From Eutreptiella sp. 'Long Island Sound 2002' (taxonomy: Eukaryota; Protista; Euglenida), in NCBI GenBank assembly GCA_964036045.1, contig OZ038378.1, forward strand, positions 196,850,001-196,914,000: a stretch of DNA of 64,000 bases, in the 5' to 3' direction. Below the pieces are notes generated by a model. That model was not told where the DNA came from, ran no database searches, and saw nothing but the letters and a program-made list of their open reading frames with translations. Shown one piece after another: positions 1 through 14,436 of this stretch. Position 1 is the first letter of the stretch, and each line of letters starts with the position of its first letter. Position numbers and translations under genes: made by a program.

Positions 1-988
1 CTGGGCCCTACTGAGCCACGCATTGAGTGCGACCAAGCCCTGATAAGTTCTGGACGTGAGTGGGGCGAGTCCTACTGAGTGGCGCATTGGACAAGGCCGA
101 TTCCTAACGAGATCCGCAGCCCCTGCCAGGCGTTAGTGGCACGGCTGGCTGCGGATTCTTGGACGCGACTGGACGGACGATGCTCGGTCGATGAGGGGGG
201 CTCGGGACGGAGGCTGTTAGGTCCTCGAGGTCTCGGGGTGGATGCGGCCTCCCTCCCTCACAAGATGGACCCCCAAGAAGATGGATTTCAGAACACCCCC
301 CTCGCCAACGAACAGATCGCAGATATGCCGTTCGGGTCCGTTTCCCCGTCTCCGCACAGAGCACCCCCCTGTCCCCAGGGGGCAGCTGGTAGAGGCCTAC
401 CAGAGCCATCCATGACAGGCTGCTGCACGACGGCAGGGCGCATGGGCACGTCGCTACTCGTGCAGGTCAGGTCAGGTATTGCCAGCCACCGCCGTCCGTC
501 AGCCCCGCTATCAAGCGTCCGACGGCCGGGCGTCTGGCCGAAACACACGCACTCAGAGGCCCTGAGAAGGCACCAGCCGGTAGAGAAGGCACCTGCCCCA
601 GACGGCCGCACCCATCGAGAGACACCCGGGAATTCGCAGACTGTCTCTCTGTAGGCCGACGCCAATGGCGCAGCCGTGCTGTGCCTGAGCGCGTTGTCCA
701 CTTGAGGCCTGTTTTCTGACCACGTTTCTACGAGGGGGACCGGTGGGAGGGGGGCAAAGGCTTGATCTGGGGAACTTGGGATGGCAGTGGTACCTCTACC
801 TCATCCGGATCGCACCGTCCCCCGGGGGGAGCGCCCCGGATTGGCTGGTCCCGGGGCTGGGGGGCCCGCTCCGGCCCATCCGACGCAACAGTGCCACTAG
901 TGCAGTCCACTGCCAAGAGGAGACTCGGGCCCGGTCTCGGGTCCCCAAGAGCGAACACCTCCGCGCGCAAACACACACCCCCACACAC

Positions 989-1794
989 CCGATGTTCACT
1001 CGGCCCCCGGTCACAACCGCGGTCTTCCCCCGGAGGTCTGCCGTCTGCCCCTTCTTCTCCGCATTGAGTGCCTCGCAGGCGGCGCACACGCGCGGCCGCT
1101 CCGCCACCGTCGCCGCCGGGTCGATGCGGCCCTGGCACATGTAGCACCGCGGCAGGAACTCGTTGCCGCGCCGGGACACCCACAAGTCCGTGGTCTTCCA
1201 CCGGACGCCCGGCAGCCCGTCCGCCTCGACGTTGAGCCCGAGCAGCACGTCGATCGACGCGTCGGACGCGGACTGCCGCCCGGCGATGTAGCGGTACCGC
1301 CCGGCCACAAGGTCCGTGTCCGAGGGATTCCACAGGCCAAGGCCCTGCGCGTCCACGCGCGCCCGCAGCCGCTCCCGGTTGGCCTCGTGCAGGGCCATGT
1401 ATTGGTCCAGATGACGCCCGGACTGCAGCCGTTTGGAAAACGGGAGCTCCACTTCGCCGTAGCCGAAATCATCGCCGGCGGTGATGCACGCCTCAAGGGC
1501 CGCGATGCGCCGGGCCGTCTCCTCGTCCAGGGTCTCCGGCAGGTCGCAGCGGGGGCTGTGCCGGCACACTTCGAAGAAGACGGTGCCAAAGCCCCGACGG
1601 CGGTACTTGAGGATCCGAGGGCCGGTCGACCACCGGCGGAGCTTTGCAGGCTCCACGAAGTTGTAGCCCGTTTGCAGGGCGCGGAGCGTGCGGGGGAGAC
1701 CCCAGAGCATGCGCCCGTCATAGCCCAGACAGACACAGTCGAGGTCAAAGAAGTTCAGTACTTCATCCATCCGCTGGTACAGGATGACCATGAC
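989..1794 (-). CDS. NTase-Zn-SDR gene, exon 4 (NTase C-part, CxxC-x16-CxxC ribbon, SDR start DLRGKTAVVTGGRVNIG)
   Basis: Acceptor ccgtag|GTC gives RTVQ-VMVILYQRMDEVLNFFDLDCVCLGYDG. Contains R..KY..RGF, CYMC...CAAC and a TGGxxxIG Rossmann motif. Donor GG|GTGTGT (phase 2); the next exon was not found in the window. Confidence 0.88.
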
Positions 1795-2132
1795 CTACGG
1801 GGCACAGGATGCATCATGTGCGAGACGAGGAGGACTGTTTGATGGACACTGGTGCGTGTGCATGGGTGACGGCAGAAAATTTTCAATCCATGCTCAAACT
1901 GTGAGGTACAACTCCTACTTCCTACTGAATGACTGCCGAACCATATGTTCTGAAGTTCCGATGCCCCGCCGGCGGGCTCGCTACTGGCTGGCCCAGAACT
2001 GGGGTGCCAGGGGTCAGAGTCCCTTTCCTCTAGCACGCAACGAGCACGCAACAATGCGACAAGAGGGCTCGGGGTCTGTGCTCCCACCGCCTCCTACATC
2101 CCATATCTGTACCCCCGTACTCCCGTACCCCC

Positions 2133-2260
2133 AGTGCCACCCTAGTGCCACCCTAGTGCCACCCTAGTGCCACCCTAGTGCCACCCTAGTGCCACTCCAG
2201 TGCCACCCTAGTGCCACCCTAGTGCCACTCCAGTGCCACCCTAGTGCCACCCTAGTGCCA
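2133..2260. repeat. 11-bp minisatellite (AGTGCCACCCT)n, about 11 copies
   Basis: Directly visible tandem array with occasional CTCC variants. Confidence 0.95.
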
Positions 2261-3049
2261 GGAGGCAGGGCAGAGAGGACGGGCTCTGTCTCCCTACCTA
2301 TCTACAGGGTGGGGGAAAGCTTTGTCAGGCTCTGACCTCCATAGGCAGGAGGGCGGGTGGCTCCCCAGAGCCTGGGGAGTCCCAGAGCCAGCCCATGCCT
2401 GGAGATCCTGCATGAGAACGAGGGCGAACGGAAGCGAACGGAGAAATGGGAAACAAACGGGGGTGAGTGGCAAACGGAAGGCAACGGATTGACTGGCACC
2501 CGCAGAGGCGAACATACCCGAAAGAAAGGTGACCGGAATTCATCAAGAAGGTGAGCATAAATCACCGAGAGGAGAATGGAAGGAAACGTTTGGGAGACAA
2601 GAGGAGACATATGGAAGCCAAAAGGGCACAAACACATAGACACACGCGTGTACACGCACAGAGAGAGCGGCACGGAATTTTCTTGCAAACAGGCCAAGCG
2701 GTTTTAGCGTAAGCGACCGGTACGGGGACAGTTGTTTCCATAAACCCGCCTCCTCAGCTTTTGCACAAGCTCCAGCGTAGCCCGTGGGCTCCTGCCTCCG
2801 CGCATGCTCCTCGCACAGTGGACTCGCCCATGGGGGCCTTCACCCCTCCAGGGGGCCACCCACCGGGAGGCCAGAGCCTGCTGAGGAATGCTCACGGGGG
2901 AGCACAGCCACACAGTGGCCCAAAACAGCCCCAACCAGCCCGGCCTGGGGGTCTAGGGCAAAGCTTCCCCCCACCTTGCAGATACCCAGGGGGATGGGGT
3001 CAGCCCATCCCCCCTACCCCCTGTGTGACATTTTGTCACGTTGCTATTT

Positions 3050-3450
3050 CTTTACGGGGCCCTGGGCAGTCACCCGTTCTTCCCTTCGCATGCTGCGGCA
3101 GGTTGATGCGTTCTGTCGGCCGCTGTGGCCTGTGTTCCTGCTGGTGTTGTTTTTGCGTTGGCGGAGCCCTGTAGTTGGCATAGTAGTTGGCATACTGGGG
3201 TTGTGATGATTGCTGCGGGGGTCATTTCTTGGCCTTTGCTGCTCACTCCCCTCCGCATTCTGGTCGTCTACCACCTGCTGCGGGCATGTGGTCTGGTGGG
3301 CTTCTTCACGGGGCCCCAGACAGTCACCTGTTCTTCCCTGCGCGTGCTGTGTTGGGTCGTTGTATTCTAACGGCGGCTGCTGCGGTCTTGTTCCTGCTGG
3401 TGTCGTTTCCGCATCAGCGGAGCCCAGTAGTTGGCACACCGACGTAGCAT
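3050..3450. repeat. Imperfect tandem duplication, period about 250 bp
   Basis: gggccctgggcagtcacccgttcttccc (about 3058) recurs as gggccccagacagtcacctgttcttccc (about 3311); ggagccctgtagttggca recurs as ggagcccagtagttggca. Confidence 0.7.
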
Positions 3451-3768
3451 GCGGACTTAAAGAAACAGCACCTATCCCCCACCCCCTGCCACCGCTGTCA
3501 CCCTGTCTGAGTCGTGACACTCTCATGGTAGCGTTTGGGACCCCCCTCCCCCCCAAAACAGCCTTTTCGGTTAGCCCCTATACCCATACCCCACGGCTCA
3601 AGTCAAGCTGCCCACTGAGTAGAAAGAGCCTTCTGCACGACTTCGCAGCCCCGCCCTTGGTAGAGTGGGGCTCTGGCACACCCCTCCGGTAGTACTGGGA
3701 CTGGCATTTTGCATGGGAGTCTGTGACGGGGACAGTGGCCGTCGCAAGTGGTTTTCCGTTGGCACCCG

Positions 3769-4270
3769 TTTGTGTGTGTGTGCCAAGGCATCGATTCTAT
3801 TCAGCTCAAACTACGAGGTTCAACAGGCCTAAATTCCTGCCACCCCTGCAAACCATAAGTCCATTGTCATGCCTGGAGGGGGGCAGCCCTGACGGGCTCG
3901 GGATCTCCATATGTACAGGAGCTGCCAACACACCATGGCTCCTCACCCTCAAAACCCACAACGAGACAACAAGACACACATTGCATGCATGTGTCTGTGC
4001 ATTTCTCTCCGTGTGTGTGTCGCCCAAATGCTCAAACTGCGAGGTTCAACACCTAAGGCCTACTGCTGCGTGCACAGAAACACGGAGATGGGATGCAGGG
4101 TGAGGTCGCCACAGAGACGCGACACAGACACCACCCCCTCTGCATGTTTGCCATTGCCCCTTGACCCAGTTCCCTACAGCCTGTCGACAGGGCACCAAAA
4201 CATCAAAACTCAGGGTTTGGCCGCTTAGCAGTAGGTCTTAGGTGTTGAATCTCCGCGCGCGCGTGTGTGT
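3769..4270 (+). repeat. Dispersed repeat A, copy 1
   Basis: Near-identical to 7989-8458 in the same orientation, apart from small indels. Confidence 0.9.
4041..4253. mobile_element. MITE-like element with about 26-bp TIR (GAGGTTCAACACCTAAGGCCTACTGC); second copy 8242-8439
   Basis: The right end GCAGTAGGTCTTAGGTGTTGAATCTC is the reverse complement of the left end with 2 mismatches. Confidence 0.7.
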
Positions 4271-4507
4271 GTGAAGGTTGAGTCCCGCCTCATCAAGTCC
4301 CTCGGAGCCGTGCAGAATGCCCACCAGTTGCAGGTGACCCTACGCATGATGTGGCACAAGATTTCCGAGTCGCAACGAGTGCAGCTTTTGGAGGAACTAT
4401 AGGACTGGAGTCACACTTGCGTTTGTTCAGCTCCAATTGGGTTGTCTCAGAAGGATCGGCAACTATTTCTGTCCAACACGCGCGACTTGATTTAGAAGGC
4501 CCCTGAG

Positions 4508-5275
4508 TTGGACTGGTATGAGGTGGTGTTGAGTATTTATTCACTGGGACTTTCAGTTCCAGGAGCTGATCGATATCGGGCCCTTCAAGAGCGTCGACGA
4601 CAAGCAGTCCATGAAGAAGGCTCTTGTGGGACATCACAATGGCCCCGTCCACCTCCAGCAAGATGGCCCTTCGATCGCTGGGGTCTCTTCTCGAAAAGCT
4701 CCTTCAAGCCCCGGAGGCATCTCACTCAGCTCCACCAGCGAACAGCTCGTGGTGACTCACCGAGTAAAGCCCCAGTGAAGGCCAAGTCAGCCACGGCCAC
4801 GGCCAAGCCTACGGATTCGTCGCCGGCAACAAAGGCTGTGCAGGGCATTCCAGCGGCGGCGGTGTAGCCCACGATGACTGTGACTCAACAGCCCCTCCTT
4901 CCAAGCGCGAGCGGCTCCGGCGACCCGACTAGCGTCACCCTACGCACGTGTGGGTTGCCGTCAACCGTTTCGTCCGCGGACTACATGGAGGCTGTCCGCG
5001 GCGCATTCGGCGTCACCCCGAGCCCAGCCCTGACCGATTCCCTCCGCCAACGGGGCTTCTTCCACTTTCAGATCCCACAAGACGTGGCAGCGACCGCATT
5101 TACCGCGGCCGACACTGTGGATTTTTGCCACCAAGCAAGATGGTCGCTGCGGGTGCGGTCCAAGGATCGTGACGGCAAGCCGTACCAGTCTTGGGGCAAG
5201 AGGTCGTCCGACGTGCCTAGCGTGTCCGTGGCCAAAGTGCCCAAGGCTGCGGCTCCGACTTCAACCGTGGTGGCA
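4508..5275 (+). pseudogene. Decayed ORF, possibly LINE ORF1/gag-like, truncated by a repeat
   Basis: Track ORFs 4508..4867 and 4874..5314 are in one frame separated by a TAG. A Lys/Ala/Ser/Thr-rich linker is followed by a globular-looking segment. Identity is inferred only. Confidence 0.3.
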
Positions 5276-6175
5276 CCAAATTTTTGCTTCGGCACCAAGA
5301 ACATTGAAGCTTAAAATTTTTCGGCCTGCCTTCGGCGGGGACCATAGGGGACCGTAGGAGGAGGGGGGTCCCAGCCAAACCTCCCTGGCCCGCCTCGGGG
5401 TAGTCAAGGGACACTTTGGCCCCGCCGTGGGATGGAGCAGGGCACATGGCAAGGACCAGCCGGTGTTGCCAGGGCACAGTGGTGCGCCAAAGGCCCATTC
5501 TTGCTGCAGTGCTGCGAGCAGCCTGTGGTGCCAACGTCCGGGGTGCGCACGGCCCACGACCTGCGAGTGTGGCACCGCTGTGCCCGTCATCGCACGGCAC
5601 ACCCGGAGGGGGGCGGTCATGGAGCGCACAGTGCACACCCTGCGCCGCGGTCGGGCTCGTGGCGCCAGGAATCCTTGGCGTCCAAGACTTTGGTAGCTCC
5701 CTCTCAGCGTAGGGCAGGCGTCAATTGGCAAGGCAGGCGGTAGCGCCAGGGGCAGCCAGTGAAGTGGCCTGTCCGGGGCCTGGAAGGGCAGTGGGTGAGG
5801 CAAAGTAGCCTCCACAGCCCTAGTCCCTCTGCTGTGCCGCACTCACAGGGTTGGCCGAGGGAGTTGGGGTGCAGGCTATCCCGGTCCTGTAACCTCGCAG
5901 CTGCCCCCTCTTTGCGCCAACGCTTGGACCCAAAATACGCCCTTTTAAATATGATGGTCTGAGGCACATGCACCACTACGCGTGCACACACACACACACA
6001 CACAGCACAGAAGCCACCCCCTTTTGTTGCATGTTGCGTGTACGACAATCTCAACCTGGTTCCTGACGCCCATCGACGGGGCACAAGAACTCAAGAGCTC
6101 ATGGTTCAGTTGCTTAGTGGTAGGACGTAGTTGTTGAACCTCGCACTTTGAGCATGATTTGAAAGATTTGGGCGT

Positions 6176-6207
<32 letters not shown>

Positions 6208-6214
6208 GGCACGC
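5273..6214 (-). repeat. Repeat B, inverted copy of 8445-9125 with about 255 bp extra (about 5435-5690)
   Basis: Reverse complement matches 8445-9125; track ORFs 5261..5842(-)/8811..9455(+) and 5759..5962(+)/8691..8894(-) are near-identical. Confidence 0.9.
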
Positions 6215-6219
6215 ACACA

Positions 6220-7100
6220 CTCCCCTGTGTGAAGAGCTCCTTTAGGGCTGCAGCCGCATCCGTTGCCATGGGGCCGTCGAGGCACGAGAAATCGTCCAAA
6301 GTGGGTTGCAGGGTGTTGCCATTGGCAGCCACGGCGGCTGATCGCGGTTGCAGAAGTCGCTTCCAGGCTAGCACGACCTCCTGCCCGCTCCCCGCAGGAG
6401 GCTCATGCTCTGGCATTGTGAGCGGCGGGTCGAGCTTCATTTTGGCAGCCAATGGGGGGAGCAGCTTGACCCACGCGGACGGCTTGACAGGGTAATCAAC
6501 AACACATTCATCGTCGGGGGCTAGCTTTAGGACACACAGCGGGCCAGCCCAACTGCCCTAGACCAGTGGACGTACAGCGCATTCCAGAGAAGAAGGACCC
6601 ACATCTTGGGGACCCGATGCATCTTCGGAGGCGTGTGCCCAGAAATGAGACTGAGGAAGTCCTCAGTGGGCAGACTACCCACATACTGGCCAAACTCGAT
6701 GTTTGGAATGCAGTCGGTGACGCCACCGTGGAACAGGACGGCCCCGTCCCCACTCCATGTTTGGGCTTGCGATCGCACCCTTGTCTGCCACCCCGCGTGC
6801 GTGACGATGTGCAGATGCGGCACCATGGACCGGAAGGTGGCAACCGAGACGGCAGGCAGCATGTCACACCAGAGCGGTTGCCACGCGGCACAGCTGCAGG
6901 CAAGAGCCGACAAGTGCGACACGCGACACACGTCCTTGACCGCAGAGTAGAGTTGCACGGAGAAGAGGAGCTCCCCAGTCTCGGAGTCACAGCCAACACC
7001 AAGCAGTGGATAAACATGAGCAGGCTGCACAGCCCGTGCTTGCTCAGCCTGCAACAGCTCAGCGAAATTGGTGAGCGGCATGGAGATGGGACAAATAAAA
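6220..7100 (-). pseudogene. Frameshifted protein-like fragment of unknown identity inside intron 3
   Basis: Protein-like stretches PLTNFAELLQAEQ...LLLWNALY and DYPVKPSAWVKLLPPLAAKMKLD...ALKELF in different frames. Confidence 0.25.
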
Positions 7101-7988
7101 ATAGACACCCAGAAAGACTGCAAAGGCAATGGGGCCCCACCCCTAGATCGGGCCGACAGAACTGCACGCATTGCGGTAGCCCACCCCAGATCGGGCTGCC
7201 GACGTCACAGGCACATTGCGCACACAACTAGAGTGCAAATCACAACTGCCGCGGTGATGCTACAACAACAATGCGTGTTTTAACTCTTTTTGCAAACACT
7301 AAACAATTTTCAGCACAAGCACAAAATTGACATAGCGGCAAGCAAACAGTAATGCCTCCGGGCCGCACAAGCTCACAACACCTGATGCTAGCGCCCTTGG
7401 CCGCAGGTGACTCCCCGTTATTACCCGCTCCTAAAGTTGTACATCCCCTGTGTGCACAGGGACACATTGCGCTAGTGTGACTAAAAACAGGCACACAACT
7501 GCAAGTGTGAAGCTGTATTCAACGGGTGTATGGCCATGCCAGTGACTTGTCCACGACGCCGCTTGACGCACGGCGTGCCCACTGCTTGTCACGTGCACCA
7601 ATACACAAAGACACATTGGCATGTTCCTCACTATCACGTTCTCCGAAGCTAGCGGCGTGCGCGCAAGTGTGCGAGCAGGTATGCAGAAGTGCAAGTGTCA
7701 AAGGAGCCTACCACTGATCTAGCCGACCCCTCGTCTTGCCCCCGCCCCCGTCCCTCTCCCCGTATCCGTCTCTGCTTGAGGCTGTCGGCAGTGCCGGTTG
7801 TGAGGGGGGGGGGTGTCCACCATCGACGGGGCCACCTCCTTGGTGCGTGTTTGCCGATGGGCCTGTTGCAGCCAATCGGGTCCAAATCCTCCTCCATTAG
7901 CCCCTGTCAACATACCGTTCACACGCAATTTGGGTTCACCGGCACGCCGCGTTGAGGCCGAGGAGGGCATTGGACGGTGGGGGATGCA

Positions 7989-9125
7989 TGCGTGTGTGTG
8001 CCAAGGCATCGATTTTATTCAGCTCAAACTACGAGGTTCAACAGGCCTACAAACCATAAGTCCATTGTCATGCCTGGAGGGGGGCAGCCCTGACGGGCTC
8101 GGGATCTCCATATGTACAGGAGCTGCCAACAAACCACGGCTCCTCACCCTCAAAACCCACAACGAGACAACAAAACACACATTGCATGCATGTGTCTGTG
8201 CATTTCTCTGTGTGTGTGTGTCGCCCAAATGCTCAAACTGCGAGGTTCAACACCTAAGGCCTACTGCTGCGTGCACAGAAACACGGAGATGGGATGCAGG
8301 GTGAGGTCGCCACACAGACGCCACCCCCTCTTGCTGCATGTTTGCCATTGCCCCTTGACCCAGTTCCCTACAGCCTGTCGATAGGGCACCAAAACTCATG
8401 GTTTGGCCGCTTAGCAGGGGGTCTTAGGTGTTGAATCTCTGCGTGTGTGTGTGTGTGCGTGACGCCCAAATCTTTCAAATCATGCTCAAAGTGCGAGGTT
8501 CAACAACTACGTCCTACCACTAAGCGACTGAACCATGAGCTCTTGAGTTCTTGTGCCCCGTCGATGGGCGTCAGGAACCAGGTTGAGATTGTCGTACACA
8601 CAACATGCAACAAAAGGGGGTGGCTTCTGTGCTGTGTGTGTGTGTGTGTGTGCGCGCGCGCGCGGGTGCACGCCTAGTTGTGCATGTGCCTCAGAACATC
8701 ATATTTAAAAGGGCGTATTTTGGGTCCATGCGTTGGCGCAAAGAGGGGGCAGCTGCGAGGTTACAGGACCGGGATAGCCTGCACCCCAACTCCCTCGGCC
8801 AACCCTGTGAGTGCGGCACAGCAGAGGGACTAGGGCTGTGGAGGCTACTTTGCCTCACCCACTGCCCTTCCAGGCCCCGGACAGGCCACTTCACTGGCTG
8901 CCCATGGCGCTACCGCCTGCCTTGCCAATTGACGCCTGCCCTACGCTGAGAGGGAGCTGCCAAAGCCATCCCACGGCGGGGCCAAAGTGTCCCTTGACTA
9001 CCCTGAGGCGGGGGAGGGAAGTTTGGCTGGGACCCCCTTCCTGCTACGGTCCCCCTATGGTCCCCGCCAAAGGCGGGCCGAAAAATTATAAGCTTCAATC
9101 TTCTTGGTGCCGAAGCAAAATTTTG
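7989..9125 (+). repeat. Contiguous repeat A+B, copy 2
   Basis: 7989-8458 matches 3769-4270 directly; 8445-9125 matches 5273-6214 inverted. Confidence 0.9.
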
Positions 9126-9409
9126 GCTGTCAGCCTCAAATATTGGAATGGGCCGAGGGGTGGGGGGAGCAAAGGGGGGGGGGTACCTCCCCCTCCTCCT
9201 ATGGTGTGCAGCTGTTCTAATACATCACTACCCTGCCCTGCACCAAGCCCTCTGGTGGGGCATCCCCCCTCTTGCTCTCATACTGATAGGCGGCCAAGCA
9301 CTGGCCATCAAGCCCTTCACCAGGTGCCCACACTCATCTGCACCCGGGCTGAAGGTGTGCGGATCCGGGGGCCCTGGGTGGGTGGTGCAAGGCCCAGTGG
9401 TGCTGCGCC

Positions 9410-9585
9410 TGCAGAGGCGCCGAAGGCGCTGGAGAAAATTTTTGGTCTAAACTAATTGACACCGAAGGCGCCAGAGAAAATTTTTGTTAGGCCCAAGGCC
9501 CAATCTTTTAAGGGGTGGGGGTGGGGGGGGGGTCCAGGGGGGGGGGTGTGGGACCCCCCCCCCCCCACACCCCCACCCCCACACC
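9410..9585 (+). repeat. Dispersed GGCGCCGAAGGCGCC/AGAAAATTTT poly-G element; related copy about 21840-21990
   Basis: Shared gcgccgaaggc(a/g)ccagagaaa(a)ttttt...ggcccaatctttt...ggtccagggggg core at both sites. Confidence 0.75.
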
Positions 9586-9664
9586 CCCAGTGGCGCCGAG
9601 CTGTTAAACGGAGCCCTGGGGTGGAAGTCAAGCAGACGGGGGGGGGGGGTTCGGCAAGGCATAC

Positions 9665-10201
9665 CTGGACAGTGCGGAAAGGCCAGCCGCCCCAGACGCT
9701 GATCGCATTGGCCGACCGCAGCAGTCGTATGTCGGGGGACCAGGATTCTGCCGTCCCGGACGAACCTTGACTTTCTGAATCGGAACCCCCGGAATCGGAG
9801 TCCGACAAGGCAACACGCCCGTGGCGCTGGTGCAGTCGGGTCACGTTTTGCCGGATCCTCTGCACCGTGCGCCGCAGCAGGTCTTTGCCCTCCTCTTCGC
9901 TTTTGCAGCACACGAAAAGGTCAATGTCAGAGCCCGCAAAGCCCCAGCCGACCTTGTCCCCGTCTGAACCCTGTGGCAGCCACACCTCCGCGGCCACTCG
10001 CCGAGCCTGCTCCAGTTTCTCCGGATCACAGGCGAAATCCAGCACCTGCAGCACGATGTCGTTGACAGAGCCCCAGCGGGTGCGCCGCAGCAGCTCGTGG
10101 CACTGCCCCTCCCACGCGGCTATCGCGTACATGGGGGTAAGATTGGGGTGCTGCCAGAGCTGCGCGCAGGCCAGCACGGCACCGCCGGCGGCAAATACCG
10201 C
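9665..10201 (-). CDS. NTase-Zn-SDR gene, exon 3 (AVFAAGGAVLAC...FAGSDIDLF...GGWPFRTVQ)
   Basis: Acceptor ccttctctcttcag|GCG and donor CAG|GTATGC, phase 0, 179 codons. Contains AGG and GS-DxD nucleotidyltransferase motifs. Confidence 0.88.
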
Positions 10202-11810
10202 CTGAAGAGAGAAGGATGGGTGTGGGGGTGAGGACAGGGATGGGCAGTTGGGGACGGGGAGGACTGCGACGCCCCGTCTTCTGCAGGCTATTGCTTAGTG
10301 AATCCTTGGGGGGGGGGGGGGGGGGGGCTGTTGTTTGGGACCCTGGCCAGCCCTGGCCAACCAACCCTCCCTCCCACATCAGAAAATTTTCCTCCGGCAA
10401 AAAATGAAATCTATTAAAGGGGCCGAAAATTTGAGGCCGATTTGGGTACACAAACTTGATATTTGGCCTCTGACCCACCCACCCAGCCCCCCCCGGGGGT
10501 AGGGTGTCCGCCACACTCAGCAATGGCCTGGTCTTCTGGTGTGTGAATGCTGCCAGGATCAGTCGTGACATCATGTGTCGGGCTGGCCACAGAGAGATGA
10601 ATGAGGGTGGAGGGAGCAGCTACACGACTGCTGCCTTCTCGGGGTTCCCAAAAGGGGGACGCAATAATGTGACTGTCCCGGGGTCAACCGTGTTCGGGTG
10701 GGCATTGGCGGCGTCTGACATGCCGCATCGGAGCCCGCCAGTACAGGGTCGAGGGCAGTAGAGGACACGAAGCAAAATGTTCAGGCATGGCGGTTTCCCG
10801 CCCAAGAGCCTGACAAAAGCGGCCTAACCAAGGGCAAAGCGTGCTTGGCAAGCCGAAGTTCAACTGGAGGACAGCCGCACTAAATACAACAGGTCAGGGC
10901 GCAAGGCGCTTCCTGACGGAACCAGAGGCCTCACCTGAAGTTGCTGAAAAAAGTCAGCCCAGTGTGCTGAGCACAACCTTGATGACTGAGAGAGTGGAGA
11001 GACTCAGCTTTGGATGTCAGGACATGAAGCAAAATGCCTGGAAACACCCCAAGTGCCCGACACCCGTAATATCAACACACCCCCATTGAAAAAAGGATTC
11101 ACAAAAGAAGAATTCACAGCAAATGCATGTTGGCCTATGCCCCCGCCCCTCTGGACTTCCTCCTCCTCGTTGAGGGGTCCAGAACGGCAGAATTTGCGCC
11201 CAGCGCGGTGCGTCCTTTGCCCCATTTGGCCGTGCTCCGTGGCTTGCCACACCACAACCCCGCCCATTGTCTTGCCTGGGAGCGTGCTCCCGCAATGCCC
11301 TGTCTGGCCCCGCTCCCCTCGACCGCTGCACGAGCCAACACTTGTTGCCGGCGCTGACATTGCCACTGCCCCCAAAATCCATGGGGGCTGGGATCCCAGG
11401 ACTTCTGGGTCCTCCGTCACGCTGTGTGCAACCCCAGGCAGCCCTTTGGCCCACGGAGGCGCGTCTGTATGGGAAACCCCCCTGCCAACATGGCGGCCAT
11501 CGCTCCAGTAGATGGCATGATCATGGGCATATCCCATCCTGTCTTGTCCTGTGGCATGATGTGGATCGGAATGGGTGTAGCAGGGGGGGGGGGGAGAAGA
11601 AGGGCTGCGGGGGGCGGGGGTCGTTCGAGCCCCTTCTCCAGATCCCCGCCCCTCGGGGGGGCATGGCTCCCGTGACCAAAACAGGCCCCGGAGGGGGTCC
11701 CCGGGGCGGTCCTGAGGTACCCCAACATATGTAACGATCCCCACCCTGCGCTGATCAGTCTGAGGCATGAATCCTGGAGGGGGGGGGGGGGGGGCATTCT
11801 TCAGAAAAGT

Positions 11811-11978
11811 TGGAGGGGGGGGGGGGCTCCCTCCCAAAACTCTGGCCCTGACTCTGGCCCAGAGGCATTCCCATACCCCGACACCAGCCCCAACCGCATT
11901 TCCAACCGCCAGTAACCGCACCGCAACCGCCATTCAAGTCCCCTGTAACCGCTCCGTAGCTGCACCGGCATTGCCCCC
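11811..11978 (+). repeat. About 168-bp dispersed element, copy in intron 2
   Basis: Nearly identical to 12662-12832. Confidence 0.92.
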
Positions 11979-12277
11979 AGTTCAGGCCGGGCCGCTTCAC
12001 GGCCGAGTTTCTGAGCCATTACTGGCACTTGGACTGCCCTTTAGTAAAGGCTCTGTCACGTGAGCCCCTTTCCGAACCCGTAACGTAAGGGGGCTCGAAC
12101 GACATCCCCCCCGGCAAACCTTTTTCTCGCCTCCCCGGACCAGCACATTGCATTTCCACAGAATCCGTGGCCGTGCTCTGCACTGCAATGGCCCCCTCCG
12201 GCAGTGCGGCGTGGGAATGACAGCAAAGGCAAATCCAGACGGACCAACGCGGACGGAATTCCGGAGGAGGCCCAGAC

Positions 12278-12643
12278 CTGGTCTGGCTGCGTCGCGAGGC
12301 CGAACACCCCCTTCAGCGCGTTGCCTGTGAATTCACGGAAGAAGAACTCAAACCCCCGCAAGTGCGGCATCAGCGAGGAGGCCCCGCTGCCGCAGGGCAT
12401 GCGGGTGGTGAGCGCGGGTCCCGGGTCCCGCAGCGCTTTGATCCGCGGGTGCGCCCCCTCTTCGGCCGACAACGGCCGCTGTGCGACAAAGGCCTCGTGC
12501 AGCGCCCCGTCCGGGGCGTAGAAGGGCTGCAGATTGGGGGCGGGGGGCGGCAGCCCGTTCATGAACGCACAGCGCAGCGCCCAGTCCTCTCGTAGAAGCG
12601 CGGTGTTCAGCACATCCCGCGTCAACAGCGGGTGCCACGGCTC
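12278..12643 (-). CDS. NTase-Zn-SDR gene, exon 2 (EPWHPLL...FREFTGNALKGVFGLATQPDQ)
   Basis: Acceptor ctcgcag|GAG and donor CAG|GTCTGG, both phase 0, 122 codons. The F..FT...LKG segment precedes the AGG motif as in NTase-like domains of fungal and giant-virus ankyrin proteins. Confidence 0.8.
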
Positions 12644-12661
12644 CTGCGAGCAGAGAATCGC

Positions 12662-12832
12662 TGGAGGGGGGGGGGGGGGCCTCCCTCCCAAAACTCTGGC
12701 CCTGACTCTGGCCCAGAGGCATTCCCATACCCCGACACCAGCCCCAACCGCATTTCCAACCGCCAGTAACCGCACCGCAACCGCCATTCAAGTCCCCTGT
12801 AACCGCTCCGTAGCTGCACCGGCATTGCCCCC
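12662..12832 (+). repeat. About 168-bp dispersed element forming most of intron 1
   Basis: Nearly identical to 11811-11978; AATCGC occurs on both sides (possible target-site duplication). Confidence 0.92.
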
Positions 12833-12864
12833 ATAATCGCCCTCCCCTTCGAGCAAATCCCGAC

Positions 12865-13545
12865 CTGCGAGGCCTGTTCCGCAGCCCGCTGCAGGGAGCC
12901 AAAGGGCACGTGGGAGAGCAGGGCCCTGAACATGCGCGGGCTGGCCTCACGGAACCGCTCCCGCAGCGCCGCGCGCCTCAGCCGCCCCGTCGGCCCCACC
13001 ACCTGCTGCGCCGCCCGCCGGGCCTCCCAATCAATGCACACGGCCTCGTGCTCCGCCGCGTGCTGAATGCCCGTGCCCATGGATGGCCGTTGCCCAGCGG
13101 CGGCCTCCAGGGCCTGCCAGTGATCCGCAGGGGCACGGGCTGCGCCTGCGGGGGAGGGCGCGCTGGGGCTCGGTGCCGCGGCAGCGGCAGGGGCCGGGCC
13201 AACCGTCGCGGCGTCAACCGCCGGCACCTGCTGCCCCCCACCCGCGGCGCGCGCGTCCCACAATTCACTGTTGAGCGCGCGCAGTGCCGCCGCGTCCCCC
13301 TCAGACAGGCCGTCCGGCGCCAGACCGGCTGGAATCGCGTCCAAAAGCTGCGCAAACCGCTCCGGGGGGGTCCAGGCAAACCGTCAAAGGGACCGCAGGC
13401 CCCATTTCAGAAGGTGCCGGAGCACCGGCGACCCGGGGGTGATCTCGACGCCCTCCTCGGCAAGACGGGCCTCAAAGGCGGAGGAGAGAGCCGCGCTGCC
13501 CGCAGGTGGACGATCTGAGAGCGCCTCAGACGGCGGCAGGGCCAT
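12865..13545 (-). CDS. NTase-Zn-SDR gene, exon 1 (putative ATG 13545; in-frame TGA at 13386-13384)
   Basis: AG acceptor with pyrimidine run at 13573 (tactcctccgcgcag), ATG 27 nt downstream. Track ORFs 13384..13899 and 12622..13344 share a frame separated only by one TGA. Ends at CAG|GTCGGG, phase 0. Confidence 0.6.
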
Positions 13546-14436
13546 GGAAAGGCAGCGCTGGTCCAACACCGCCTGCGCGGAGGAGTACGTGATAGTGTTG
13601 GTCCGGCATTCCGCCCCTTCTTCGGTACCTTCATCCAGCCGGACGCCTGCCTTTGGAGCTGATCCCCACCCCCCCACAGCGGAAGCAGGCACACAACCAC
13701 CGCAAGGGGGACGTACCCCCCGCACCCCTTGTAACCCCCCCCCCCCCCCACCTAATGTCAGGCCAGTCCCTCGCATGGGGGGGGGGGATGATTGCAAGGG
13801 GGAGGGGGCTATGCGGCCGAATGTGCAAAATGCATTCCCCCAATCAGACACCTGCCGCGGTGCTGCGGGGCGGCGCCTCTCTCCCTGACCCTTGCCCATC
13901 CATCAGGTACATCCCTGTCCTCCGGTCCCACGGGCCCGTCCGATGGGGTGTTGTCGCACGGTGCCCACACGGTACGGCACCGTTCTGATGTTTCCGAAGA
14001 TTGCACCCGGCGTCTCAAATGGAGACTTTCGGAAGGTTGTCGTTACTTCCTGGGGACTTGCCGGGGGTCATTTGGGTGGTTGCTGCTGACTCCTGGTGGC
14101 TTCTGGGCTACAGCCAAGCGGTGGGGCCTTGTCGATGGTCCCCGGACCGTGGCGAAGAGCCCAACACAATGGTTGGTACATGGTGCGCGCGCGGTGCGTG
14201 CAACACCCTCCAATGCCAAGCTCCGCCCCACGCATCCCTGGCCCTGTGGCCCCACTGCATTTCACGCAGGGACACGCTCGGGGGTCACTATGCAGAGCAC
14301 ACGGGGGTATACCGCAGAGCGCGCGCAGGGGGTCACAGCCGCACACAAACAGCAACGCAGAGCGAACAGGGTCGGGCCAGCCCCCCCTCCTCTTCCTCCT
14401 TTCACCTTTCGCTTTTGACTCACTCGTCACAAAGGA

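Follow-up and report, generated by a model that had tools for sequence, protein, structure and literature searches.

The gene described here lies at the left end of a 64,000-nt stretch of the genome assembly of the euglenid Eutreptiella sp. 'Long Island Sound 2002' (GCA_964036045.1, contig OZ038378.1, positions 196,850,001 to 196,914,000), hereafter the window. We conclude, with a probability of about 0.7, that it is a genuine nuclear euglenid gene of five exons and a member of a conserved, uncharacterised eukaryotic family, in which a nucleotidyltransferase (NTase) is joined to a zinc ribbon and to a short-chain dehydrogenase/reductase (SDR) devoid of the catalytic Tyr. What is demonstrated is how the exons are arranged, that they are collinear with cDNA-derived orthologues, which folds the two domains adopt, which residues are conserved and how widely the fusion is distributed; collectively, these findings place two intact-looking active-site scaffolds on one polypeptide, kept together across distant eukaryotes.

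Exon structure and collinearity with orthologues

The gene is read on the minus strand, and positions are those of the window unless stated otherwise. Splice sites and phases were taken directly from the sequence, searches were run exon by exon, and folds were computed on P0001, an orthologue standing in for the euglenid protein. The locus of P0001 has no introns and lies on 3.5-kb contigs from RNA sequencing runs; the 90% cluster of the protein holds three Durusdinium trenchii proteins. The complete model spans 3,609 nt, or 1,203 codons, with four GT-AG introns (221, 2,076, 7,870 and 1,385 nt), and the gene is single-copy in the 2.28-Gb assembly at the sensitivity used. Its features, with the matching residues of P0001, are the following.

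Exon 1, 13545-12865, minus strand: ATG at 13545, 227 codons, N-terminal helical region; donor CAG/GTCGGG at 12865/12864; alignment to P0001 40-180, extending to 8-180 at its widest
Intron 1, 12864-12644, minus strand: 221 nt, GT..AG; junction gapless at P0001 residues 180/181
Exon 2, 12643-12278, minus strand: 122 codons, helical region before the NTase core, FTGNALKG at 12331-12308; P0001 181-301, 59% identity, E 2e-44
Intron 2, 12277-10202, minus strand: 2,076 nt, GT..AG
Exon 3, 10201-9665, minus strand: 179 codons, first half of the NTase core, with AAGGAV at 10192-10175, a helical insert and GSDIDLF at 9934-9914; P0001 303-466, 44% identity, E 2e-45
Intron 3, 9664-1795, minus strand: 7,870 nt, GT..AG, repeat-filled; donor GTATGC, acceptor CCCCGTAG
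Exon 4, 1794-989, minus strand: 268 codons plus 2 nt, NTase second half, linker, zinc ribbon, SDR strand 1 and Gly-rich loop; P0001 467-734, 71% identity
Motifs in exon 4, minus strand: FFDLDCVCLGYDG at 1752-1714; KYRRRGF (of RILKYRRRGF) at 1608-1588; CYMC-x16-CAAC at 1146-1075
SDR Gly-rich loop region, 1029-989, minus strand, in exon 4: GKTAVVTGGRVNIG, with the motif DLRGKTAVVTGGRVNIG ending at 989
Intron 4, 988-1 plus 397 nt to the left of the window, minus strand: 1,385 nt, GT..AG; donor G/GTGTGTGG at 989/988
Exon 5, contig 196848385-196849603 (L004:9603-8385; window -397..-1615), minus strand, outside the window: 406 codons, TAA stop; P0001 736-1109, 53% identity

The four exons inside the window (227 + 122 + 179 + 268 codons plus 2 nt, that is, 796 codons plus 2 nt) are joined in phases 0/0/0 through the donors GTCGGG, GTCTGG, GTATGC and GTGTGT and the acceptors CTCGCAG, TCTTCAG and CCCGTAG, with exon 4 stopping two bases into a Gly codon. 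This split codon is restored by the intron 4 acceptor GTGTTAG/G (L004:9604/9603) and opens exon 5, which reads YATALRLLRLGAEVVVTTRFP ... NNAAQT ... VVNVTS ... HPHTNMAKASLNM and also contains TTRFP and HPHTNMAK. An earlier note, made from the letters of the window, had joined four GT-AG exons of the minus strand in frame over about 796 codons; the coordinates, splice sites and phases agree with the sequence, and the motifs it had listed are all present (FTGNALKG, AAGGAV, GSDIDLF, FFDLDCVCLGYDG, RILKYRRRGF, CYMC-x16-CAAC and DLRGKTAVVTGGRVNIG). That the exons form one gene stands too, although an in-frame TGA at codon 54, which interrupts the open reading frame (ORF), had been overlooked, and the gene does not end at 989 but continues into exon 5, which completes the SDR.

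All five exons are collinear with P0001, in order and gapless at every junction. When exon 4 was compared with 1.84 billion representative proteins using HMMER, 711 matches were obtained at E<=1e-3, the best of which was P0001 (E 1.7e-130, 71% identity over 268 residues), which is far beyond chance. The start at ATG 13545 is backed by an N-terminal 'LSDRPP' held in common with the Gymnodinium smaydae protein P0290. Third-position GC content (GC3) is 0.77-0.88 in the exons, against an intron GC of ~0.59.

Integrity of the reading frame

The TGA lies at 13386-13384 on the minus strand, at codon 54 counted from the ATG, and is the sole lesion in 1,203 codons. In a ten-sequence alignment, its column is occupied by R or K in nine orthologues (RSL[R/K]QLSW versus RSL*RFAW), and a local alignment with X in place of the TGA passes through codon 54 without a break. 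Selenocysteine was considered and rejected, since the orthologues carry Arg or Lys at this position and none has Cys; a tiny intron excising the TGA was likewise rejected, the orthologue alignment being gapless across codon 54. This leaves a nonsense change of one base, an allele or a base error. A second contig with the gene (ENA ctg10578_34x_l) is identical over 3,516 nt and is therefore not independent.

In one reading, this copy would be a young pseudogene or null allele, in which an Arg codon of the CGA/AGA type became TGA and from which no full-length protein is made. Conserved sequence flanks the TGA on both sides, a start at the next in-frame ATG would lose the conserved WTPPERF...LRALNSELW block, no product derived from host transcripts was found in the protein collection, and the assembly holds no other copy of the gene. 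Nevertheless, we regard a pseudogene as rather unlikely: no second lesion accompanies the TGA, the four introns have canonical boundaries, none of the catalytic and near-invariant residues is lost, GC3 remains high, and the same picture would arise from one wrong base or from allelic variation in a polyploid genome, the second contig being the same sequence data. The possibility that adjacent NTase and SDR genes were wrongly joined across long introns, for which the repeat-rich 7.9-kb and 2.1-kb introns and the lack of host transcript evidence in word searches might speak, is effectively refuted by sequence comparison, because exon 4, a single open exon, alone spans both putative enzymes (the C-terminal half of the NTase, followed by the ribbon and by SDR strand 1 with the Gly-rich loop), and cDNA-derived orthologues have the identical continuous order with gapless junctions.

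The nucleotidyltransferase domain

By its predicted fold, the first domain is a nucleotidyltransferase of the Pol-beta superfamily, of the Gad2 or class II CCA-adding-enzyme type, in which the catalytic DxD carboxylates are retained. The AlphaFold2 model of P0001 residues 97-660 has a mean predicted local distance difference test score (pLDDT) of 86 and a predicted template modelling score of 0.88. In a VIA-align comparison with 48,161 PDB representatives, ranks 1-9 are all class II A-adding or CCA-adding enzymes, bacterial poly(A) polymerase (PAP) or TENT5B, at Z 9.3-5.4, led by 3wfo_A (Z 9.3, root-mean-square deviation 3.9, 186 residues aligned), 3h37 (8.6), 3aql (8.4), 4wby (8.0) and 9kma (7.6); the rows after rank 9 are unrelated helical proteins at Z<=5.1. 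Foldseek returned the same families weakly, with E about 0.1. The likeness to CCA-adding enzymes and poly(A) polymerases and the expected fold, both foreseen in the earlier note, are thus borne out by the best structures (class II A-/CCA-adding enzymes, Z 9.3-7), and so is the occurrence of the domain in giant-virus ankyrin proteins: among the predicted viral structures of BFVD, 46 matches at E<=1e-3 are giant-virus ankyrin, BTB and VWFA proteins, and giant-virus CCA-adding enzymes match at ~1e-5.

The hG[GS] motif corresponds to AAGGAV (10192-10175), which in the P0001 model forms a strand (206-210) followed by a helix (212-218). The metal-binding carboxylates, [DE]h[DE]h, correspond to GSDIDLF (9934-9914), both Asp residues being present in 46/46 aligned members, and the invariant FDLD of the block at 1752-1714 offers two candidates for the third carboxylate. 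In the 48-member family alignment A1, 14 residues are near-invariant (>=90% conserved), and all of them are present in exons 3 and 4 (SDIDLF D/D, Q, FDLD D/D, YDG DG, R, N and RxxKYxxRG). Scans of exons 1-4 and of the orthologue NTase region with NCBIfam, PHROGs and a Pfam set lacking PF26128 gave no usable match, nor did sequence searches of the PDB with exons 3 and 4. As a lead only, ESM-Atlas features of exon 3 point to NTP_transf_2/MTPAP-like clusters (score 0.91).

Comparison with the class II tRNA nucleotidyltransferases and PAP (3wfo, 3h37, 1miv, 3aql, 9kma) and with TENT5/FAM46 (6jyj) shows both what is common and what is peculiar to the family. At Z 9.3-6.9, with 166-214 residues aligned, these enzymes share with it a strand, the hG[GS] motif and a helix, followed by the DxD strand. 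However, identity is just 8-14%, an insertion of ~80 residues separates GG from DxD, a distinctive FDLD...YDG...RxxKYxxRGF block, different in sequence, apparently takes the place of motifs B-E (including the RRD and EDxxR nucleotide-selection motifs), and no tRNA-binding body or tail was recognised. The NTase-like domain was also seen in other architectures, exemplified by P0141 (1,632 aa), P0090 and P0126: in one, WGR, PARP_reg and PARP catalytic domains precede it and an HMG box follows; in another, it comes after BTB_2.

The zinc ribbon and the SDR domain

A linker of ~120 residues separates the NTase from the C4 zinc ribbon, whose CYMC-x16-CAAC precedes the TGG of TGGRVNIG by 23 residues, within the limit of ~45 residues that defines the subfamily. 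Exon 5 matches the Pfam family adh_short (PF00106) with 39.8 bits (gathering cut-off 26.6; E 4.6e-10), and the model of P0001 residues 661-1109 (pLDDT 77) finds classical SDRs at Z 22-24 over ~230 residues. The Gly-rich loop TGxxxGxG takes the form TGGRVNIG (exon 4, ending at 989), and the NNAG motif that of NNAAQT, in exon 5. The Arg in the Gly-rich loop and the TTR after strand 2 suggest that the cofactor is probably NADP(H), a reading that follows the SDR cofactor rules.

The leftward extension proposed in the earlier note, with the aim of reaching the YxxxK region of the SDR, did recover the rest of the domain in exon 5, with HPHTNMAK standing in place of YxxxK. The catalytic Tyr is absent: four residues before the Lys stands Thr (K-4), His residues occupy K-5 and K-7, and in profile alignments to the solved SDRs 3rkr and 3wxb the catalytic Tyr falls opposite either this Thr or the second His (K-5). 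The other catalytic residues are kept, namely, Asn in LVNAMAPF, Ser in VVNVTS and Lys in NMAK. Relative to classical SDRs (4z0t, 1cyd carbonyl reductase, 1sny sniffer and 3wxb), the domain shares the Rossmann fold, Gly-rich loop, NNAx, Ser and Lys, and its AKAALNM helix resembles the SKAALNM of sniffer-type proteins; it differs by the change of Tyr to Thr with two invariant flanking His residues, by 100-190 extra residues inserted after strand 4 and before helix E, and by the N-terminal zinc ribbon.

Zinc ribbon and SDR form a conserved module that makes up whole proteins by itself, thousands of them bacterial and some fungal, as the earlier note had held for the segment comprising the ribbon and TGGRxxIG. 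Among the candidates scored in a search with exon 5, 4,478 proteins matched at E<=1e-5; most are stand-alone proteins of 430-545 aa, named 'SDR family NAD(P)-dependent oxidoreductase', from bacteria (Gemmata, Archangium, Acrocarpospora, Luteibacter and Acidobacteria) and from a chytrid. CxxC-x14-20-CxxC lies just before TGGRxKIG in 104/120 listed relatives, and HPHTNMAK is found in 117/119 relatives examined. The invariants of alignment A2 (TRFP, N.AxQT, the insertion D.R..NSW...E..E...N...P, E-G-F, H-P-H-x-N-M-A-K-A-x-L-N-M and D-x-G-W) all occur in exon 5. The stand-alone proteins from Gemmata, Archangium, Acrocarpospora, Luteibacter and Gaertneriomyces, 40-50% identical to exon 5, share with the euglenid gene the ribbon directly before TGGRxKIG, TTRFP, NNA[AC]QT, the D.R..NSW insert and HPHTNMAKA[AS]LN; they differ in having a short, different helical N-terminus in place of the NTase, and none has been characterised.

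The lost Tyr raises the question of whether this half is an enzyme at all. It might instead be a noncatalytic Rossmann module, sensing NAD(P)(H) or acting as a scaffold in the manner of NmrA/HSCARG and thereby regulating the NTase; the near-universal replacement of the Tyr by Thr, and alignments in which Thr or His takes its position, speak for such a role. We consider it rather unlikely. The Asn, Ser and Lys of the catalytic set are retained, H-P-H-T-N-M-A-K is invariant from bacteria to eukaryotes, beyond what cofactor binding needs, and its His could serve as an acid/base; moreover, in bacteria the module stands alone, with no partner domain to regulate.

On the Acrocarpospora contig, a same-strand gene cluster opens with the stand-alone SDR and also encodes LRR, ankyrin, AAA_5 (MoxR-like) and VWA/DUF2201 proteins; two of these domains, ankyrin and VWA, recur in giant viruses as fusion partners of the NTase-like domain. 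A scan of IMG/VR viral contigs with the SDR alignment found nine that encode an SDR of the HPHTNMAK type with zinc ribbon, at least three of them giant-virus genomes by name (GVMAG) and others up to 0.6 Mb long. None of the nine has a recognisable NTase half; three of the viral copies (L024, L025 and L026) carry an N-terminal extension of ~330 aa with no detectable similarity to the NTase exons.

Distribution of the fusion

The same domain order is present in at least 45 of the best 100 representative clusters from the exon 4 search, in proteins of ~900-1,300 aa in which the zinc ribbon is optional and the SDR carries H.HTNMAK. Named carriers are dinoflagellates (Durusdinium, Cladocopium, Breviolum, Effrenium, Symbiodinium and Gymnodinium smaydae), Chromera velia, the choanoflagellate Didymoeca costata, the amoebozoan Vannella and the chytrid Dinochytrium. 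Precomputed Pfam matches on the deposited fusion proteins are Gad2 and adh_short; the proteins themselves are annotated as "uncharacterized", some bearing the label 'Uncharacterized protein R665' after a mimivirus protein.

Examples of these 'R665-like' proteins come from the dinoflagellates Durusdinium trenchii (CAK9037845.1/CAK9038648.1/CAK9067020.1), Cladocopium goreaui (P0283), Symbiodinium natans (P0289), Effrenium voratum (CAJ1461232-4) and Gymnodinium smaydae (EP00928_P055223), and from Chromera velia (Cvel_22669) and Didymoeca costata (EP00039_P015395). They have the identical architecture in ~1,000-1,150 aa, are collinear with the five exons at 44-75% identity per exon, and share CxxC..CxxC, TGGRVNIG and HPHTNMAK with the euglenid gene. 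The latter is their orthologue, distinguished by a host that is a euglenid and not an alveolate, by its SDR, in which the low-complexity insert is longer, and by the in-frame TGA. Judged from these comparisons, the predicted architecture is common and already deposited, yet uncharacterised, and the euglenid gene is one more orthologue. The novelty of the fusion implied by the earlier note does not hold, while its remark that no protein of this architecture had been characterised does: in the literature searched, we found neither a characterised protein combining NTase, ribbon and SDR nor a paper on the fusion.

Phylogenetic position of the euglenid copy

For every exon, the closest relatives are dinoflagellate proteins (44-75% identity). 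In maximum-likelihood trees of the exon 4 and exon 5 regions, inferred separately and both by quick searches without bootstraps, the euglenid sequence falls into one clade with Gymnodinium and Symbiodiniaceae, the Shimodaira-Hasegawa-like approximate likelihood ratio test giving 94 (exon 4) and 99 (exon 5) for the clade of euglenid and dinoflagellates, with Chromera and the choanoflagellate outside. Because this clade conflicts with the species tree, the trees suggest a putative protist-to-protist horizontal transfer between dinoflagellates and euglenids, in either direction.

A dinoflagellate origin of the contig itself was considered and rejected. The 24-nt sequence that we take to be the Euglena spliced leader has 3,309 exact copies in the genome, compared with 0 for the reversed control and 0 for the dinoflagellate leader. 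The copies of the Euglena-type leader are spread along this contig and others, far above the expectation from spliced-leader RNA genes alone.

Possible functions and the link to Gad2

It is possible, and we put it forward tentatively, that the two domains act together, as transferase and redox enzyme, on the end of a nucleic acid or nucleotide. The NTase would transfer a nucleoside monophosphate from a nucleoside triphosphate, with Mg2+, to a hydroxyl acceptor, most likely the 3' end of an RNA or nucleotide, since all solved structural neighbours act in this way. The attached zinc ribbon-SDR module would bind NADP(H) and either oxidise or reduce the same substrate, by His/Thr/Lys chemistry instead of Tyr/Lys, or gate the transferase according to redox state.

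The earlier note had favoured another coupling, activation by nucleotidylation followed by NAD(P)H reduction. Spelled out, the first domain would adenylylate a carboxylate-type substrate and the SDR would reduce the activated intermediate, as in carboxylic acid reductases and the terminal reductases of nonribosomal peptide synthetases. What this proposal has in its favour is that an SDR comes after a domain that uses nucleotides. It is very improbable: neither the window exons nor nine full-length orthologues contain an ANL (AMP-binding) or phosphopantetheine carrier domain, the SDR is of the classical type, not of the extended R-domain type, and lacks the Tyr, and Pol-beta nucleotidyltransferases nucleotidylate hydroxyls and form no acyl-adenylates.

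A further line of thought leads to phage biology. Precomputed Pfam matches to PF26128 (Gad2) at E<=1e-5 were found in 12/12 family members looked up (P0001, P0011, P0126 and nine others), including BTB-fused ones. Gad2 is a stand-alone phage protein of ~400 aa, shown genetically to block the Gabija defence and predicted with AlphaFold2 to be a nucleotidyltransferase of unknown substrate (10.1101/2023.05.01.538930); the 2026 reviews give no mechanism for it. By these matches of the orthologues, the first domain is common to both, but here it resides in a eukaryotic protein of 1,200 aa fused to an SDR, whereas Gad2 stands alone in phage. Because Gabija is bacterial, inhibition of Gabija is not an expected phenotype in a eukaryote. 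One could nevertheless imagine the Gad2-type NTase-zinc ribbon-SDR protein as a eukaryotic and giant-virus counterpart of the phage anti-defence enzyme, a conflict or stress system that would nucleotidylate and then redox-modify an RNA or nucleotide 3' end through an unprecedented His-based SDR site, and that would move horizontally among protists, here dinoflagellates and euglenids. We consider this proposal, taken as a whole, improbable.

Several observations weigh against assigning the gene to a functional NTase-SDR family as we have done. When the protein collection was searched by words from P0001 and from exon 4, everything retrieved was a dinoflagellate protein or a genome-called ORF, and no transcript-derived protein from the euglenid host appeared, so that splicing and expression rest on comparative evidence; given the TGA at a conserved codon, this copy may not yield the full protein. 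The folds were predicted on the dinoflagellate orthologue P0001 and not on the euglenid protein, and the Gad2 label likewise comes from precomputed Pfam matches of orthologues, not from the window's exons; a tblastn search of 50,697 phage genomes with the NTase region and two short family members found nothing. Redox catalysis is not assured, as the canonical catalytic Tyr is missing. Finally, none of the family members has a known substrate, and the bacterial neighbourhoods of three stand-alone SDRs have no common partner gene.

Introns and flanking sequence

Intron 3 contains an inverted repeat with arms at ~5314-6197 and 8440-9087, 82-98% complementary, and a direct repeat of 279 nt (3845-4123 and 8046-8324, 97%); these are probably nested transposon insertions. 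Intron 4 carries two adjoining dispersed repeat units of ~125-145 nt, at 463-605 and 759-884; many contigs together hold at least 77 copies, 76-95% identical. As the two units often adjoin elsewhere too, the pair is an element resembling a short interspersed nuclear element. In the part of intron 4 to the left of the window (L004:9700-9800, window about -300..-200), a long purine microsatellite of the (GGGA)n type is followed by a G-run, and homopolymer runs of C and G lie beside several exons.

GC content is 58-68% across the gene and its introns (window 1-14000), versus ~46-57% across most of 14001-64000, with a local rise to ~0.60-0.63 at 18-22 kb. No long conserved ORF was seen in the other 50 kb of the window.

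Implications

The euglenid gene reveals no new architecture; it adds a member to a family that has no characterised representative in the literature searched, and its affinity to dinoflagellate proteins makes it a concrete candidate for protist-to-protist gene transfer. Its second half belongs to a very large SDR subfamily that reaches from bacteria to eukaryotes; the invariant HPHTNMAK in place of YxxxK, together with the integral zinc ribbon, implies a chemistry or a mode of regulation for which SDRs offer no described precedent. At the same time, the first domain links the anti-Gabija protein Gad2 to many eukaryotic and giant-virus proteins in which it is fused to SDR, BTB, ankyrin, VWA or PARP/WGR/HMG domains. 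Solving the substrate of one member would annotate thousands of proteins.

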